From NCBI GenBank assembly GCA_965603825.1, contig CBFDEM010000014.1, positions 434,001 to 498,000 on the forward strand: a stretch of DNA of 64,000 bases, given 5' to 3'. The stretch's first letter is position 1; each line of letters starts with the position of its first letter. The translations under genes were made by a program, and so were the position numbers. Positions 45,497 to 54,852 of the stretch are shown in pieces. The notes beneath the pieces were generated by a model. That model was given only the letters and a program-made list of their open reading frames with translations. It was not told where the DNA came from and searched no databases. The DNA is from Blepharisma stoltei ATCC 30299. Its lineage: Eukaryota; Protista; Ciliophora.

Positions 45497-48400
45497 ATGA
45501 ATAACAGAGTCAAAACAATCAATTGTGTAAAAGGCGAAATCCACAACCTCCTGGCCATCATGCGCTTCGTTCCTGACTTCACAGCATCTCCAGAAATCGT
45601 GATTTATATGTAGTATATAGCAGAGTTCAAAAGCTTGTTCCAATCCTTGCTTGTATGTTCTGACGTGGACTCATTGGATTTTTGGTCGCCATTCCTAAAA
45701 ATCATACAATCCACTGAAGTGGCAGGTCCTATTGTAGGCGTAGCTTTGTCCTCGATCCACAAATTTCTATTGTATGGGTTTTTGTCACCAACATCAGGAT
45801 TCATTCTGAATAACATCGTCAATAGTGTGGTTCAATGAAATATTCCAGGGCTTTATTCAAGCAATGATGAAGTGATATTTATGAAACTCCTACAAGTCTT
45901 CTTAGAGTGCTTGAGAACACAGGCAAGTATTTATTTGACTGATGCAAGTGTTTGGAGCATTGTAAAAAGATGCTTTGATGTATTTGATAAAGAAAGAGTA
46001 AGCGAACTTTTAAAAAAGACAGCCCAAAACACTTTGCTGCAAATATTTATTGTTATTTTCAACAGAACCGCAGAAATGGGGAATGAAGAGTGCTATGGTG
46101 TTCCATGTGTCAGAAATATTTTGCTGAAATTAGCAAATCTGATTGGGACAAATGAGAAAAATGAAGCTAATTGGAAAGAAAAGAGATGCTTGGGACTGTT
46201 TTTGATGAACACAGCACTTGAAACAGCAGGCGAAGCAATGGGCCTGCACGAAGGAATTGTGCTTATAATCCAAGATGAAGTCTGCAAGTCACTCCTGATT
46301 AACTCAAATACAGGAGATTTGTTCATTTTATCGCTAACTTTAAGAGTGGTTTTCAACCTCTTTCAATCCATCAAAAGACATTTAAAGGTCCAGCTAGAAG
46401 TATTCTTTAACAGCATTCATCTTAAAATTGCTTCTGAGTATGAAGATTCACAAGATCCCTTTGTATACCAAAGAAGCGAACTGGCACTAGAAAGCATTGT
46501 GGATTTTTGCCGAGAGCCAAGTCTAGTTCTTGAGCTTTATACCAATTATGACTGTGATCTCCATTTTGCAAACCTCTTTGAAGCTTTGTCAAAATTTTTA
46601 TGCAAGCATGCTTTCCCTCTGCATCAAAATTTAATAAGACTTAATGAGCTGTGCCTCCAAGGACTTTTAGCAATAACTTCAACAATATCTATTAGATGTG
46701 ATCCTGAAATGCATAATATTGAGCCAGAGCCACTCGAAAATAAAATTAAAGAAAATAAAGTAATGAAAGAAAAATACTCAGAATCTGCTTATATCTTTAA
46801 TAACCATCCCAAAGATTTTATTGTGAAACTTCAAGAAAAAAATTATTTGCCTAAAAATTGTGACGCAGAAGCTGTTGCGAAATTTTTAAAAGAAAATCCT
46901 GCAATAGATAGCACGTCTTTAGGAGAATATCTTGGTAAGCCTGGAGAGTTCAATCAAGAAGTGCTCCGCCATTATTTGAAATTCTTTGACTATGGAGGTA
47001 TGAGAATAGACCTTGCGTTAAGATTAACTTTTACAAGTTTAAAAGCCCCTGGCGAGCCTCAATGCATTGATAGAATTCTTGATGCATTTGGAAAAGTCTA
47101 TTTTCAACAAAACCCTGAGTTTGCAGATGAAACTGCTTCCTATGTCCTTGCATTCAGCATTATCATGCTCAATACAGATTTACATAGCTGTGCAGTTATA
47201 AATAAAATGAGCATAGAAAGCTACATGAGAAACGTGAAGGGTGTAAATGGAGGAAAAGATTTCCCTCAAGAAATGCTTATTGAAATCTATAATAGCATAA
47301 AGAACGAGCCAATTCAAGTCTCAGAAACTGTAAATGTCGTCAAAAGTGAGGATTTGGCTGATAATGATCTAGCCAATAACACATGGAAAAAGATTATCAA
47401 GAGGACTAAAGGGTCAATGAATTATAGAATGCTCAATGAACTCATGCTTCAGCCAGCAGGAGAAAATGAAAAAGATATGCTGGATATATTATGGGAGTCC
47501 GGGATCCTAGGGACATTAACAAATGCTATGGATTGTGCAGGAGAAGAAAAATCATTGAAAGCAATTAAAGAGCTTTTTATAGAAATCTCTAAAATTTGCA
47601 CATATTTTAATATGACTGACCACATAAACCGACTTCTGAGCACTCTTTGTCAGTGCTTTTTAAGAAATACTGACTCTATCATTGCATTTCATCACAGTAA
47701 AAGAGCTCTTTATGCCCTTGAAGCTGCAGTTGAGTGTGCAATTGCATGCAAAGACCACCTAAATGGTGTTTGGGGCCACCTCATTAACTGTCTATTTAGA
47801 CTTCACTCATTGAAATTATTGCCACAGCAATTAATTGACCTTGATGATTTTGTAGACAAAGAAGGAAGAATTCTGCCAATGTCAAACCCAGTTCTTGACG
47901 ACTCATTTTTTCAGTACTTCAGAGCAGGATCTAAAGTATCCAACCCTCCAAGCCATAAAAGTGAAGATGATACAGTCGAAGAATCTTCTGGGCTCTGGGC
48001 TTCTTTTGCTATGTATTTAGGAGTGCCAACTCAGCCAGCCAAAAGAGGAGATGAGCTGATGCAAGAACTTACACAAGAGCTGAGAGAAAAAGTAATAGGG
48101 ACTGGAATACATCAAATCTTTTTAAATACCAAATCTTTACCTTTGGAATCATTGAACTACCTGCTTAGAACTTTAATTCAAAGATGTAAGGATTCTAATG
48201 AAGAAGTTAATATTGTCCTTAGCCTCGAACTTTTAACAAACTCTATACTTTCAAATGCAATCAGGCTGGAGGTATCTGAATGAAAATCAGCTATAGCACA
48301 TTTAGTTAATGTTGTGACAAGTACTCATCACTCTTGGAGCACTGAAAGAGGGCTTGTATGCTTACTGAGATTATGCATTCATCACCATGACGATATTGTT

Positions 48401-49402
48401 GACTTAAAAGCCAGCTTGGTAACTGTATTGGAGCATATGGCTGAATTACCTCCCAAAAAACTGTCAAGATATGCTGATCGTTTGGCGGCTGGCATTTTAA
48501 TACTAATGAACTCAGGAAATACTAGCTTTTTGATTCAAGGAAGCTCTTGGACCTTACTGCTGAAAATTCTGAACTCTTTTTCTTTAATAGAAAGAACAGC
48601 TATGACTGGCTTCGAAATCGTCTCTTTAATCATCCACCACCTTCACGAGTGGCCTGGGGTTGAGCTAAAAATGTATGAAGAACTCTTAGATCTCATTATT
48701 GTGTATATAAGGCAAGATCTTCCTTCATCTGGACGAATTTCGCTTGGACTTAAACTAGTGCACTCCTTACACAAGCAAATTTTAAAAAGAAACACATCAG
48801 AAGTAGTCATCTATTTTTGGAAAAAAATTCTTGCATTGGTTGGAAGACTCTGCCAAGAACAAAAGCAGGCATTAAGGCTTCAAGCTTATACACTGCTTCA
48901 AGAAATAATTCTGACCAGCAGTTCTCATCCTGATTTAGAAAAATGGCCGCTTTGGAAAGAATGCTTTGAGCGAGTTCTATTTCCTCTTGTCGTCGAGCCA
49001 TTTATGATTACTAGAGAAATGCTAAAAGATATATCTGATGAAAAAGCCACTATCATGAAAAAAGAATTTGAAATGTGCAGAGAAAAAGCTATGGATATCA
49101 TCTGTTACGCAGTTTTATTTAAAATCAAAACCCTGAACACAGCTTCTGAGTTCACCACTTTTTGGGTCCGTCTGCTTAAACTATTATCACAGACTTTGAA
49201 AAACAAAGAAAGTGGGGACGTAAATGAAAAAAGCTATGAAATGTTAAAGAACTTGCTTTTGGTACTGAAAACTGACAATGATTTGAATCAGGAACAGTGG
49301 ACACTTACTTGGGAGATTATTAATTTGGATGCTCTAAGACACGAAATAGAGCCTGAAACGGCTTCTCAACAACACATTGATGACACAATTGAAGTTTTAT
49401 AA
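45497..49402 (+). CDS. GBF1: GBF1/GNOM-type large Arf-GEF (Sec7)
   Basis: DCB PFLKIIQS.EVAGPIVGVALSSIHKFL, HUS LYTNYDCD, Sec7 PGEPQCIDRI and SIIMLNTDLH; intron 45599-45613; TGA 45836 and 48281=W. Confidence 0.93.
45599..45613 (+). other. 15-nt intron
   Basis: GTGATTTATATGTAG. Confidence 0.85.
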
Positions 49403-49433: not shown

Positions 49434-51257
49434 TTACTTCTTCTTAGAAATAATAGCCTCACAGTCGTTGCACACTCTAACTGGAGTTTTTGTATATCCG
49501 AGTATTGGGATGAATTCCCGTTTAAGACTGCAGTTGTTGCAAATGACTAAACCACAGTTCCGGCAATGATGCTTTCTTATCAATAGCCAAAATCTCACTT
49601 GGCATTTCGGGCAGATTTCAGCAGTCTCGTCAGGAACCCATTTTGGCATCTTCACAAGTAGCCATTCAGCAGCTGATTTGCTTTGGATTTCTTTTGTCTC
49701 TTCCTTCAGTCTGTAGTGCAGGGTTAGCATTGAGGACCCTCACATGTCGTTTTGGACGTCTTTTAGGGTCATATATGGGCTTAATACGCGCCCTTTACAT
49801 AAAATCTACATTGTTCTTACATCAATCTCAATATTTTGTTGATCCAGTTTCCTTGTAACATAATGACCCACCCTTTGAATAGTCAGAGAACTCCTTGTTC
49901 TCAGTATATTGTTTGTAATAAGTCCAAGGACGGTGTCGCTAGGAAGCAATTGAAATCTGAAAATGTCTTCTCTAAGCTCAACTAAGACACCTTTAAATAT
50001 TTTTCTATCGTCTTCTGATAGTAATTTGCAGTTATGAAGCAATATATGCTCAAGATTTTTGCATGAGTTGCTGATGAAGTTTAACCCTTCTTTTGTTATA
50101 TAAGTGCCTGATAAATTTATCTTTTTCAAGCTATGGCAACCCTTAACAAGCAGTTCAATTCCTTTATCAACAACTGAATAGCAGCCAAGTAAACTCAAAT
50201 CTTCTAAGCGCCTGAGTTTTCTTAAATAAGCCACTCCTTGATCAGTAACACATCTGCATTCAGATAAAGATAGCCGAGTAAGCCCTCTGCCGCCTCCTTT
50301 TAAGTCCACAGGGAGAATTGTTCCATCAATCCCACTTATCTCAGAATCAATCGAGCTGAGCCTAATTTGTCTTGGGTTTGGAAACTTTTCAGTCAAGCAC
50401 ACCAGTGCATGGTCATCAACTCCATCACATCCATCAAGCAGTAATGTTTGAAGCCTGCATAAATCTTACGACAAAGGATTGCAATTTTGAGCAATTGCAA
50501 GAAGTGACTGCGCATCAATATATTGGCAGTATCTGAAATCTAAAGAAGTGAGCTGCCACGCCCTTTGGCAAATAGCTTTCAGCCTTTGTGAATCAAGAAT
50601 GAACTTATTCGGAAAAACAGAAAGTGTCCTTCACAAAATGGGCTGCAGTGAAATTTGGTTCCATCTCTTTGACACTCTCGCTACTTTGCTGAGGTCTTCC
50701 AAGTTCAAGTAGCCGAATATTTCAATAAAAAGAGCATCAGGCAGTGCATCCAAGTCAGATACATAGCCTTTATTAATATATTTTTCATGGATCTGGTTTC
50801 TATATAATAAATAAGTTTTATATTTTTTGAATTTCTGCTGTATAATAAGAGCTGCTTCAGCTTCCTTAAGCTCAATGTCAGGAACTTGTAAGAACTCTCT
50901 GATTAAGTATACCCATGGAGCTTTTGGATTAGAAGCGACGAAATAGTTGTGGATCTCAACAAGAGATTTGATGTAGTAGTTTAAGTCGATTTTTCGTTCT
51001 TTTATGGCAGCTTCTGATACACTGCTCATAAATACTTGTTGGCTGGGCAGTTTTGGGATCAAATCAAGAAGCTTCTTTTTGGAATTATATTCCGTATGTG
51101 AAAAATAGCACAAAACGCACTGAAATTTGTAAAAATCATTGAATCTTTTGGTAACAACAGTGCGTGAGAAATTGGTATAAACTTCGATTCCGTACAGAAC
51201 GAAAGGATTTTTGTTTGGCACGATGATATGTAAATTCAAGCTTGCAGAAATCTCCAT
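49434..51257 (-). CDS. PX - IQ - F-box - LRR - RAWUL/ubiquitin-like - FYVE multidomain protein
   Basis: Three ORFs fused by TGA=W (50631, 49740) and introns 50455-50469 and 49806-49820; PX KRFNDF..PKLP..ERK.DL..Y, IQ AALIIQQKFK, F-box LPDALFIEIFGYL..VSKRW, LRRs, FYVE WVPD..RKHHCRNCG..RVC. Confidence 0.85.
49806..49820 (-). other. 15-nt intron
   Basis: GTAAGAACAATGTAG. Confidence 0.85.
50455..50469 (-). other. 15-nt intron
   Basis: GTAAGATTTATGCAG. Confidence 0.85.
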
Positions 51258-51437
51258 TTTATAATTTATAAAGTGATTGCCTTTATTCATCCACGATTAG
51301 AGTGGATTATTGTTTTTCAGTAGTCATTATATTTATTTTTTAGATAGGAATTTGTTGAGCTGAATTTATTGATTTTTTTTTAATTTGACAATGATACCAA
51401 TACAGTCATAATTTAAAATTTATATAATTTGCAAACA

Positions 51438-52263
51438 ATGATAGCTAATGATAATGGAAGATCTTCACCAGATAAAGGCTTAGATGGAGAAACTAGAAGC
51501 ACTTTTTATGAAACTCCCAAGTATTGACGGGTGAAACAAATTTCTTCAAAATTAAACAATTATGAGGCTGACGCAAAAGCAGAAGTGGAATCTCAAAATG
51601 AAGCCTTAAATAAGCGTATTGAATCACTTCAAAATAAAATAACATCATTAAAAGCCTTAGAAGAGACCAAACTCGAGGTAATTTCGAATTCAGTCAGTAG
51701 AAGATAGCATTTCTGCTCTACAAGAATCGTTTCTCGATGAAGCCCAATCCCTTGAAGCCCTGAGCGAGAAAAAGACCAAAGAGTTAAAACTATCTGAAAA
51801 TAATCTGATTATCAGCATTACTGATGAAAAACAAGAAAGAAAACTCCATGAAATGAAAAGAAACAAAAACCTCGATGAAAAATTTGTCACGTTAAAAATC
51901 GATGTTTCCAATGAAATTAAGATGAGAGAAGAGTCAGAAGAGTACCTTATCACAGATTTCGAAACTGATATCATCAATTTAAACGAAAGTGTCAGCAACG
52001 AGTCAAAAATTAGAGATGACAGGTTTGAAGACTTGATCAGAATCATTGGAGATAATTTAAGCAGAGGCTATCAAGCTCTTGATGCTGAGAGGAATAGCAG
52101 AAAAGCTATCCATGAACTTTATAAAAAATTTGTAAACGAGCTTAAAGCAAAAATCGAAAGTCAAATTGCACAAGATCGAAGAGAAAGAGAACTGTTTGAA
52201 GAAAACTTAATAAGGGTGCTAGAGAATGCTTGCAGGAGCATGGAAACTGGAGTCAAATTATAA
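51438..52263 (+). CDS. SF-assemblin/beta-giardin-like striated fibre protein
   Basis: Short head plus coiled coil with periodic E...R; ends ERELFEENLIRVLENAC; one TGA=W; 16-nt intron 51678-51693. Confidence 0.72.
51678..51693 (+). other. 16-nt intron
   Basis: GTAATTTCGAATTCAG; removal restores frame. Confidence 0.8.
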
Positions 52264-52326: not shown

Positions 52327-54852
52327 ATGGAGGTATCCTACACTCTTTTGCATGATGAGGCTGAGTGGCGAAAATCTCTAATAGAAGGAAATGTGCAATA
52401 TGAGCTATTCTTGAGCATTGGCGAAGACTCATTCGTAGGGAGTGTCTCAATCCAATTTTTTTTGAATTCGGCTCCTACAAAACTTTGGTTGGATTACTCA
52501 GGGAAATTTATTAATTCCATTGAAGTCAATGATTCTATTTGCCAATCAACTAGGTCTGATAATAAATTGTACCTCAAATGCCTCAAGCAAGGCCTGAACC
52601 AAATTCAAATATCATTTGAGTCTTACTACTCCACTAATGGAACAGGATTGCATAAGTTCACAGATCCTATGGATGGTCGGACTTACATATATTCATATAT
52701 GTGCCCATACTATGCCAATAAAGTGTTCCCTTGTTTTGATCAGCCTGACATCAAAGGGGAATTTACAATCACACTTGAAGCTAATGAAGACTTCAAGGTA
52801 TACTCCAACGTAATTATGAGATAGGAAGAAGTACGGTCCAGGTCAAGGGCTTATGGCAGAGCAAACCACATTTTCTGCCCAACAAAACCTATAAGCACTT
52901 ATATTGTCGCAATTATTTGTGGAGAATTCACAGGGAGGAAAGATGAGCTGGATCGGGGAATTTTTTGCCGTCAAAGTTTGTTTAATTTTATTCAATTTGA
53001 AGGGGTTTTTGGCTGGACTAGAGGAGGAATGAACTTTTATCAGGAGTTTTTTCAAAAAGAGTATGCATTCGGGAAATACGACCAAGTGTTTTGTCCTGAA
53101 TTCAACATGGGTGCCATGGAGTGTGCCGGATGTGTGGAAATTAATGATAATTATGTATGAAAAGAGCAAGCAGTAAAAAGCGAAGAGTTTTGGCTATATA
53201 ATACTGTTCTTCATGAAATGTGCCATATGTGGTTCGGGAATCTAGTCACACTGAAGTGGTGGGATGATTTATGGCTCAATGAAAGCTTTGCTACTTATTT
53301 CTCATTCTACGCAAATGAAGAAATCGCAGGCGGTGATTCATGGATATCATTTTTAGAAAATAAAGTAAGGGGTTATGCTGCTGATACTCTTAAATCAACT
53401 CATGCTGTCCGAGTACAAGTTACAGATACTCAAGAAGCCATCTCAAACTTAGATTCCATCACATATTGAAAAGGAGCTTCCCTCTTAAAGCAGCTCATTT
53501 TTACGATGGGCTTGGATGCGTTTAGACGAGGGATGGTGTCTTATTTCAATAAATACGAATTCCAGAACGTGACAGTTTATGATTTTGTTGATACTTTGCA
53601 AGACGAAACTGAATTTAACCTTAGAGATTGGACACAAGAATGGGTCTTAGAAGCTGGAATAAATTCTATAAGAATTGTAAATGCTATTTAGGAATGGGAA
53701 GTCGAAGATGGGATCATTTTAAATGCAACGGCTTATCAGAATATTACAAGTGGGACTATTTTGAGAAAGCACGTTTTACTTGTAGAAGGAATGAATGAAG
53801 AAGGAACTCTTTTTAAAGAAAAAATTAAAATTTCTAATGTAGAGCAACAAATTGTTTTAGAACTTATAGGGAAGCCAGCGCCTAAAGGCATTATTGTAAA
53901 CTCTGAAGACCACGCATATGTAGAAATCCTTATTGATTCGAAGTCTTTGGAATTTTTCTTTATAAACAGACAAATAAACTCAATCTCTCTTCTAAACCGA
54001 GGAGTGCTTTGGCTATCAATTTGGTCTCTAGTAGAAGAACAGCTACTTTCTTCCACAGTTTTCCTTGATCTTGTATCACAACTTTTGCCATCAGAGCCTT
54101 GCGACGAAATAGTTGACATAATTCTTGGAAACGCGCTGAAAGCAACATTTAATTATTTGCCTTATGAAATGATTTCCGCTCATAGTCAATCTTTGGTTCA
54201 AGCAATCAAAGAGAAATTGTCTAATAATGCAGCTGATAAAAATACACGTAAGCTTTATTTAGAACGAAAATTATTTGGATTTTTATTTTCAGACGACGAC
54301 ATCAGAGAAGCTTATCGATACTCTTTATCTCTGGCACGAGCTGAAACATGGAGAGGGATAATGTCGCTGGCTTCGATTATCCCTTATGAAGAAATCAAAG
54401 ATATACTTGCCCAAGAACTTAAATATGACACGACTGACAACTCACTCAAATTGAAATTATATTGTGATGGTGCTGCATTTGATAATAAAAAATTTTCTTG
54501 GGATCTGATTTTGAGTAGAGGTGAACTCTCATTGTCTCAATTGGAATTTCTGATGAAGGGATTTAACCAATTTAACCAAAAAGAAGTGCTAAAGGAATAT
54601 GCCCAGCAGTTTTTCGAATATTTACCATCTATTTTTAATTCTCAAGATAGAGAATATGCTGAAGCATTTTTCAGATATCTTCTACCTAGATATGAAAAGC
54701 CTGAAGTAAATATTGAAAAATTGCTAAAAATTAACTCGAACCAGAAATGAGTACAAAGAATATTAGATGAAACAATTGAATCGTTGAGAAAGGATAGCTC
54801 GTGCCAGATGGTTGTTAAGGCAATGCTTGATGAAAATAAAGAATCTTCTTAG
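52327..54852 (+). CDS. M1-family aminopeptidase N
   Basis: FPCFDQPDIK, KYDQVFCPEFNMGAMEC, HEMCHMWFGNLVT..WWDDLWLNESFA, ITYW(TGA)KGAS; introns 52810-52824 and 53677-53691; three TGA=W. Confidence 0.93.
52810..52824 (+). other. 15-nt intron
   Basis: GTAATTATGAGATAG. Confidence 0.87.
53677..53691 (+). other. 15-nt intron
   Basis: GTAAATGCTATTTAG. Confidence 0.87.

Follow-up and report, generated by a model that had tools for sequence, protein, structure and literature searches.

A conserved PX–F-box–LRR–RAWUL-like–FYVE protein hidden by introns and code reassignment in Blepharisma stoltei

One spliced gene behind three open reading frames

We analysed a 64,000-nt stretch of the genome of the ciliate Blepharisma stoltei ATCC 30299 (the window), in which a gene of 597 codons plus a stop codon lies on the minus strand at 49434–51257. 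The coding sequence starts with an ATG at 51257 and ends with a TAA at 49436–49434, and subtracting 30 nt of introns from its 1,824 nt leaves a protein of 597 amino acids when UGA is read as Trp. Three exons (51257–50470, 50454–49821 and 49805–49434, −) are separated by two 15-nt introns of the form GTAAG...AG with an A at position 10, each containing an in-frame stop: intron 1 (50455–50469, −; phase 2) has a TAA inside it, and intron 2 (49806–49820, −; phase 0) has a TAG at its end. Two in-frame TGA codons, at 50631–50633 (−) and 49740–49742 (−), specify Trp209 and Trp496. The unspliced frame is interrupted by TGA 50633, TGA 49742, the TAA in 50469–50455 and the TAG that ends 49820–49806. Both the reading of UGA as Trp and introns of 15 or 16 nt have been described for this strain (PMC9942806).

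The gene converges on one for a GBF1-like Arf-GEF of the Sec7 type (45614–49402, +), which reads as a single frame through TGA and lies 31 nt from our gene's stop codon. Upstream are a coiled-coil gene resembling SF-assemblin/beta-giardin (about 51434–52263, +), from which a 16-nt intron near 51676 is spliced, and an M1 aminopeptidase gene (52327–54849, +) split by TGA codons and probably by small introns. The order Sec7 gene, PX–F-box–LRR–FYVE gene, M1 peptidase recurs in a syntenic genomic orthologue (L033).

The original prediction of a single hidden gene of about 600 residues, assembled from separate open reading frames through two TGA codons and two 15-nt introns, was borne out by transcript data. 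In each of three runs from one study, a single contig (~49409–51255) spanned the gene with exactly two 15-nt deletions, at intron 1 and intron 2; it did not end at TGA 50631 or TAG 49806, as transcripts of separate genes would have done. That these runs are RNA is a presumption, which the precise loss of the introns supports. No contig from these three probable-RNA runs covered the intergenic bin at 51324–51424. Other 15–16-nt GT..AG intron candidates within the gene were retained in the RNA contigs and were rejected. Both introns were also absent from two JGI transcripts in another collection, which come from a relative (93% nucleotide identity), and the codon differences between this relative and our gene comprised 110 synonymous and 7 non-synonymous changes; the gene is under purifying selection.

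Comparison with homologues supported the same model. The syntenic orthologue (71% nucleotide identity) has both introns, whose internal sequences differ, and, like a paralogue described below, has TGG at the position of the second TGA. A standard-code homologue of 569 aa (P0002) aligned with the unspliced gene over its whole length (50% identity) and has Trp at the positions of both TGA codons, and other Trp codons interchange TGG and TGA between the gene and its relatives. That the locus instead holds three separate genes, or fragments lined up by chance, is all but excluded: standard-code ORF calling does yield three ORFs and database gene callers cut the relatives likewise, but this reading is refuted by the spliced contigs that span the gene, the intronless paralogue, unbroken homologues of 569–596 aa and the TGG/TGA interchange. 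The locus produces one transcript and one protein, and the gene model is settled.

Domains of the protein

The domain order that had been predicted, PX, F-box, LRR, RAWUL-like and FYVE, holds by Pfam, PDB and family-profile matches. At the N terminus, a PX domain (approximately 50883–51257, −; Pfam core 51167–50952) matched PF00787 with 30.3 bits against a cut-off of 21.6 (E = 6e-7). An intact PX phosphoinositide site comprises an RRY-type motif in β3, a Lys after the proline-rich element and an Arg in α2 (PMC8340361). Two of these three elements are present, the β3 Arg–aromatic pair (KRF) and the α2 Arg; the residue after the proline-rich loop is Gln, and the Lys is kept in a distant relative, P0012. 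At the C terminus, a FYVE finger (49449–49643, −) scored above the Pfam cut-off (E = 3e-21), with all three PI3P motifs (WxxD, RKHHCR and RVC) and eight Cys zinc ligands; the HH pair is lost in some family members. The canonical FYVE finger was therefore as predicted. It had also been proposed that the protein carries a lipid-binding module at each end. By its motifs FYVE is predicted to bind PI3P, but a PI3P module at both ends is doubtful because the PX domain has Gln in place of a phosphoinositide-coordinating Lys.

A long predicted helix joins the PX domain to the F-box and contains an IQ-like motif (50802–50855, −). This segment has a conserved IQxxF/Y(R/K) core, and the core pattern [FILV]Qxxx[RK] occurs in the helix of this gene and of most full-length members, although so short a pattern is weak evidence. 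The strict pattern [FILV]Qxxx[RK]Gxxx[RK]xx[FILVWY] was matched by no family member tested. Seven of ten slices gave weak matches to Pfam IQ_SCN5A_C (best E = 3e-4, none above the cut-off), and the slice from this gene itself gave none. The IQ motif of the original prediction is thus reduced to an IQ-like core in a helix, with an incomplete consensus.

The F-box (50622–50753, −) scored above the Pfam cut-offs for PF12937 (40 bits, cut-off 24.3; E = 3e-10) and PF00646 (30.8 bits, cut-off 20.5), and ends in an L–W motif whose Trp is encoded by a TGA codon. Directly adjoining it on the C-terminal side are FBXL-type leucine-rich repeats (approximately 49985–50621, −), about seven by count in a structural model of P0002. 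Their Pfam LRR scores fell just below the cut-off, and their best PDB match was FBXL2 (E = 7e-21), in line with the FBXL-type arrangement that had been proposed. Our structural models are of the homologue P0002 and stand for the Blepharisma protein by homology. Foldseek placed FBXL2 first for the full-length P0002 model, followed by KDM2B (in 5JH5) at rank 2, with FBXL17, FBXL5 and Skp2 also among the top matches; the model had a pTM of 0.55 and does not establish a composite surface of LRRs and ubiquitin-like domain. An ESM Atlas fold search returned FBXL clusters only, and ESM Atlas feature searches returned no matches. Weak, overlapping Pfam side matches to Zn-ribbon, SWIRM and bHLH domains were rejected. 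Judged by its sequence, the protein is an FBXL protein and not a member of the WDR48 or PCGF families, although it carries their domain.

That domain, a ubiquitin-like beta-grasp domain of the WDR48-SLD2/RAWUL type, lies between the LRRs and the FYVE finger (49692–49982, −). It is split in this gene by intron 2 and a TGA codon and is unbroken in the paralogue, where it matched RAWUL (1.8e-5) and DUF3337 (5.6e-5). The gene's own stretch reached 25 bits against PF11816, below the cut-off; 22 of 26 family members matched PF11816 and PF16207, with P0012 above the PF11816 cut-off (41.2 versus 35). A profile built from the 26 members found UAF1 residues 566–678 (E = 1.8e-9), BMI1 (2.6e-6) and PCGF1 (5e-4), with the best Atg8 at 0.47. 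An AlphaFold model of the P0002 middle domain showed a beta-grasp fold (pLDDT 87.5), for which Foldseek ranked UAF1 first (TM 0.74). VIA gave Z scores of 12.2 for Atg12, 11.7 for BMI1, 11.2 for PCGF1, 11.1 for RING1B and 10.4 for UAF1, with GABARAP/LC3 proteins also high; the Atg12 match had an rmsd of 2.1 over 85 residues at 15% identity, compared with 24–29% identity for UAF1. Fold similarity by itself cannot tell the subfamilies apart, but the sequence can, favouring the SLD2 of WDR48/UAF1 and then the Polycomb RAWULs. Together, the profile and the predicted fold uphold the earlier assignment of a RAWUL/WDR48-like domain. Between P0002 and four closer homologues the ubiquitin-like domain is the best-conserved domain (65–69% identity, versus 52–56% for FYVE); between P0002 and the distant P0012, FYVE is better kept (47%, versus 40%). 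No exon piece or full-length homologue had a WD40 or RING match in Pfam.

Family members and their distribution

We searched the 41.46-Mb assembly (64 contigs) and sequence collections with the exons of the Blepharisma gene separately, and for the whole architecture with the 363-aa open frame of the paralogue and with full-length homologues. This paralogue, on contig 56 (L006:2112–3827, +), is intronless and full length (571 aa; 35–49% identity by piece). A shorter paralogue of ~169 aa on contig 32 (L007, about 2126–2635, +) consists of the PX domain and IQ-like helix only and has lost the PX Arg–aromatic motif. The gene at 49434–51257 and its full-length paralogue on contig 56 hold the only RAWUL/DUF3337 matches found in the genome, with no other WDR48/UAF1 C terminus or PCGF/RING1 RAWUL among the matches, and these counts are lower bounds. 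The contig 56 paralogue is fast-evolving in our tree, which covers the exon-2 region only, has long branches, is unrooted and gives no origin or order of events; an expressed orthologue of this paralogue (L018) shows TGG-to-TGA swaps.

Beyond this genome, exhaustive searching with the paralogue frame and profile searching found more than 20 environmental or transcriptome clusters with the whole architecture or pieces of it. One named member, SteCoe_24630 of Stentor coeruleus (OMJ76069.1, UniRef100_A0A1R2BH55; 573 aa), has the same architecture. In one transcript, TGA stands at conserved cysteines, as in the Euplotes code; its PX domain lies in another frame ~500 nt upstream of the rest (L023:63–985), through a retained intron or a frameshift. 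The complete architecture was also found in the EukProt entries GILJ01 and GILK01, which are 97% identical to one another and possibly contaminants; these prefixes may denote strains of colponemids, which are sister to all other alveolates. Among the matches listed, most of which are unnamed, there was none from Tetrahymena, Paramecium or apicomplexans. The C termini of the homologues checked had no CaaX tail. These results show that the architecture is conserved across distant ciliates.

The original prediction had also noted that no characterised protein with this architecture was known to it. The family is already present in databases as a hypothetical protein, and it is not unique to this genome. 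We found no paper on the family or its architecture in searches with poor coverage of subscription journals, including searches for RAWUL with FYVE and for F-box with FYVE, PX and LRR in ciliates. A 2010 survey of FYVE/PX architectures does not mention 'F-box', SteCoe_24630 is absent from the text supplements of the Stentor regeneration paper, and our searches returned no study of it. The locus thus encodes a real, expressed and conserved domain architecture that is apparently uncharacterised. Each module is familiar, and protists commonly shuffle domains around FYVE and PX, so that the combination is less surprising than it might seem.

Proposed function and comparison with known systems

We propose, with a probability of roughly 55%, that the protein is a membrane-targeted SCF substrate receptor that is held on PI3P membranes by its FYVE finger and uses its SLD2/RAWUL domain as a partner dock. 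Binding of PI3P by FYVE would keep the protein on membranes that contain this lipid, such as those of endosomes or food vacuoles, with the degenerate PX domain perhaps adding a weak contact to lipid or protein. The F-box would bind one of the genome's Skp1 proteins and thereby a cullin-RING core, and target selection may be shared between the LRR solenoid and the SLD2/RAWUL domain directly next to it. The SLD2 of UAF1 recruits its substrates by binding SIM-like motifs (PMC4835495), and RAWULs engage their partners by extending a sheet (PMC5310723); by analogy, the ubiquitin-like domain could take up a short strand from a substrate or cofactor. Membrane-associated proteins would then probably be ubiquitinated and in this way sorted or turned over. 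Calmodulin might regulate the protein by way of the IQ-like helix, which is the weakest step of the proposal. In the genome we counted at least 11 matches to Skp1, about 12 full-length cullins and three strong PI3K accessory-domain matches, which are candidates for Vps34.

At least 89 PX matches were also found, and the PX, Skp1 and cullin sets are large expansions. Separately, apparent fusions of an F-box with cullin repeats occur at L035:441–2141 (+; contig 13) and L036:369–2066 (+; contig 32), where an F-box and a partial cullin (PF00888) share one frame of ~566 codons with UGA read as Trp; adjacent matches at contig 6:164075–162762 (−) point to a probable third.

The same anatomy fits equally well a Skp1–F-box trafficking adaptor that works without a cullin, as Rcy1–Skp1 does in endosomal recycling (PMC7185969), or a scaffold whose F-box serves mainly its own turnover, as has been suggested for the trypanosome protein TbFRP, whose F-box has an unclear role (PMC3593210). 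The Rcy1 example indicates that F-box proteins can act cullin-free, and the 11 or more Skp1 paralogues leave room for specialised complexes. However, an F-box followed by LRRs is the classic layout of an SCF receptor and the nearest structures are mostly active SCF receptors, so we regard an adaptor or scaffold of this kind as a real but secondary possibility.

A bolder form of our proposal is that these proteins form an ancestral alveolate family of SCF receptors that target themselves, a UAF1-type SLD2/RAWUL having passed from deubiquitinase or Polycomb complexes to an E3 adaptor as its third context. On PI3P membranes, controlled by calcium/calmodulin, such a receptor would recognise SIM-like strands and, in predatory protists, govern how food vacuoles mature. 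We consider this fairly unlikely in its entirety.

A role on the autophagy side, with recruitment by PI3P to phagophores and the ubiquitin-like domain acting as an unconjugated Atg12/Atg8-like docking module, draws on the rank of Atg12 as top VIA match, the high scores of GABARAP/LC3 and the precedent of FBXL20, which ties an FBXL to Vps34 and autophagy (PMC4298137). Atg12 nevertheless scored within 1 Z unit of BMI1 and PCGF1 at lower identity than UAF1, the sequence profile favoured UAF1 far above any Atg8, and the domain cannot be conjugated because it is internal; we therefore find this role unlikely. Very improbable is a fused nuclear counterpart of the PRC1.1 core (KDM2B F-box–LRR, SKP1 and PCGF1 RAWUL): a RAWUL/PUFD pair straddles the F-box–LRR in that complex (PMC5310723), KDM2B ranked second by Foldseek and this gene and its full-length paralogue hold the only RAWUL/DUF3337 matches found (a lower bound), but RING, CxxC, JmjC and PHD domains are absent, a canonical FYVE and a PX are present, the ubiquitin-like domain is nearer WDR48 than PCGF and the match to KDM2B is no more than the similarity shared by FBXL proteins in general.

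Lipid anchors or partner proteins are the usual means by which F-box receptors come to membranes. To our knowledge, substrate-docking ubiquitin-like domains of the SLD2/RAWUL type have otherwise been found in just two settings, WD40 (UAF1) and RING (Polycomb) proteins. Judging from its domains, the family described here appears to carry its own PI3P reader together with such a docking domain, which would place RAWUL/SLD2 in a third protein context, and on our preferred reading as an SCF receptor its likely task is to tag proteins at endosomes or food vacuoles. It could offer an entry point into how ciliates couple ubiquitination to the maturation of endosomes or food vacuoles, and through the Stentor homologue the family can be tested directly by RNAi. 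Together, code reassignment and 15-nt introns keep families like this one out of sight; most of its database members are fragments.

Among known systems, the FBXL receptors (FBXL2/FBXL20, FBXL17, FBXL5 and Skp2) share with the ciliate protein an F-box followed directly by cysteine-containing LRRs. FBXL20 acts on Vps34 (PMC4298137), and IQ motifs in the substrates of FBXL2 make it sensitive to calmodulin (PMC7729025), whereas the ciliate protein adds an IQ-like helix in cis, as well as PX, SLD2/RAWUL and FYVE domains; no match spanned the whole architecture. TbFRP (Tb927.7.3790), a FYVE–F-box–GTPase of Euglenozoa, likewise has FYVE and an F-box in a single chain, and its FYVE–F-box construct is membrane-associated and wortmannin-sensitive, an experimental demonstration of PI3P-dependent membrane targeting (PMC3593210). 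This comparison is by shared domain types: TbFRP differs in domain order, has a GTPase where the ciliate protein has the LRRs and ubiquitin-like domain, lacks PX and belongs to another lineage. The SLD2 of WDR48/UAF1 (Pfam DUF3337, Ubl_WDR48-Bun107) is the closest sequence match to the middle domain and its first-ranked fold match in Foldseek, but in UAF1 the domain comes after a WD40 propeller and SLD1 and serves deubiquitinases, whereas in the ciliate protein it comes after the LRRs of a putative E3 adaptor. The Polycomb RAWULs (BMI1, PCGF1 and RING1B) belong to the same beta-grasp subfamily. PRC1.1 brings an F-box–LRR and a RAWUL together as separate chains, whereas the ciliate protein holds both in one chain, has no RING and carries lipid-binding domains in place of chromatin readers. 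SteCoe_24630 of Stentor has the same architecture, is 48–58% identical to the Blepharisma protein in each of the three pieces compared and is named only 'hypothetical' or 'FYVE-type domain-containing protein'.
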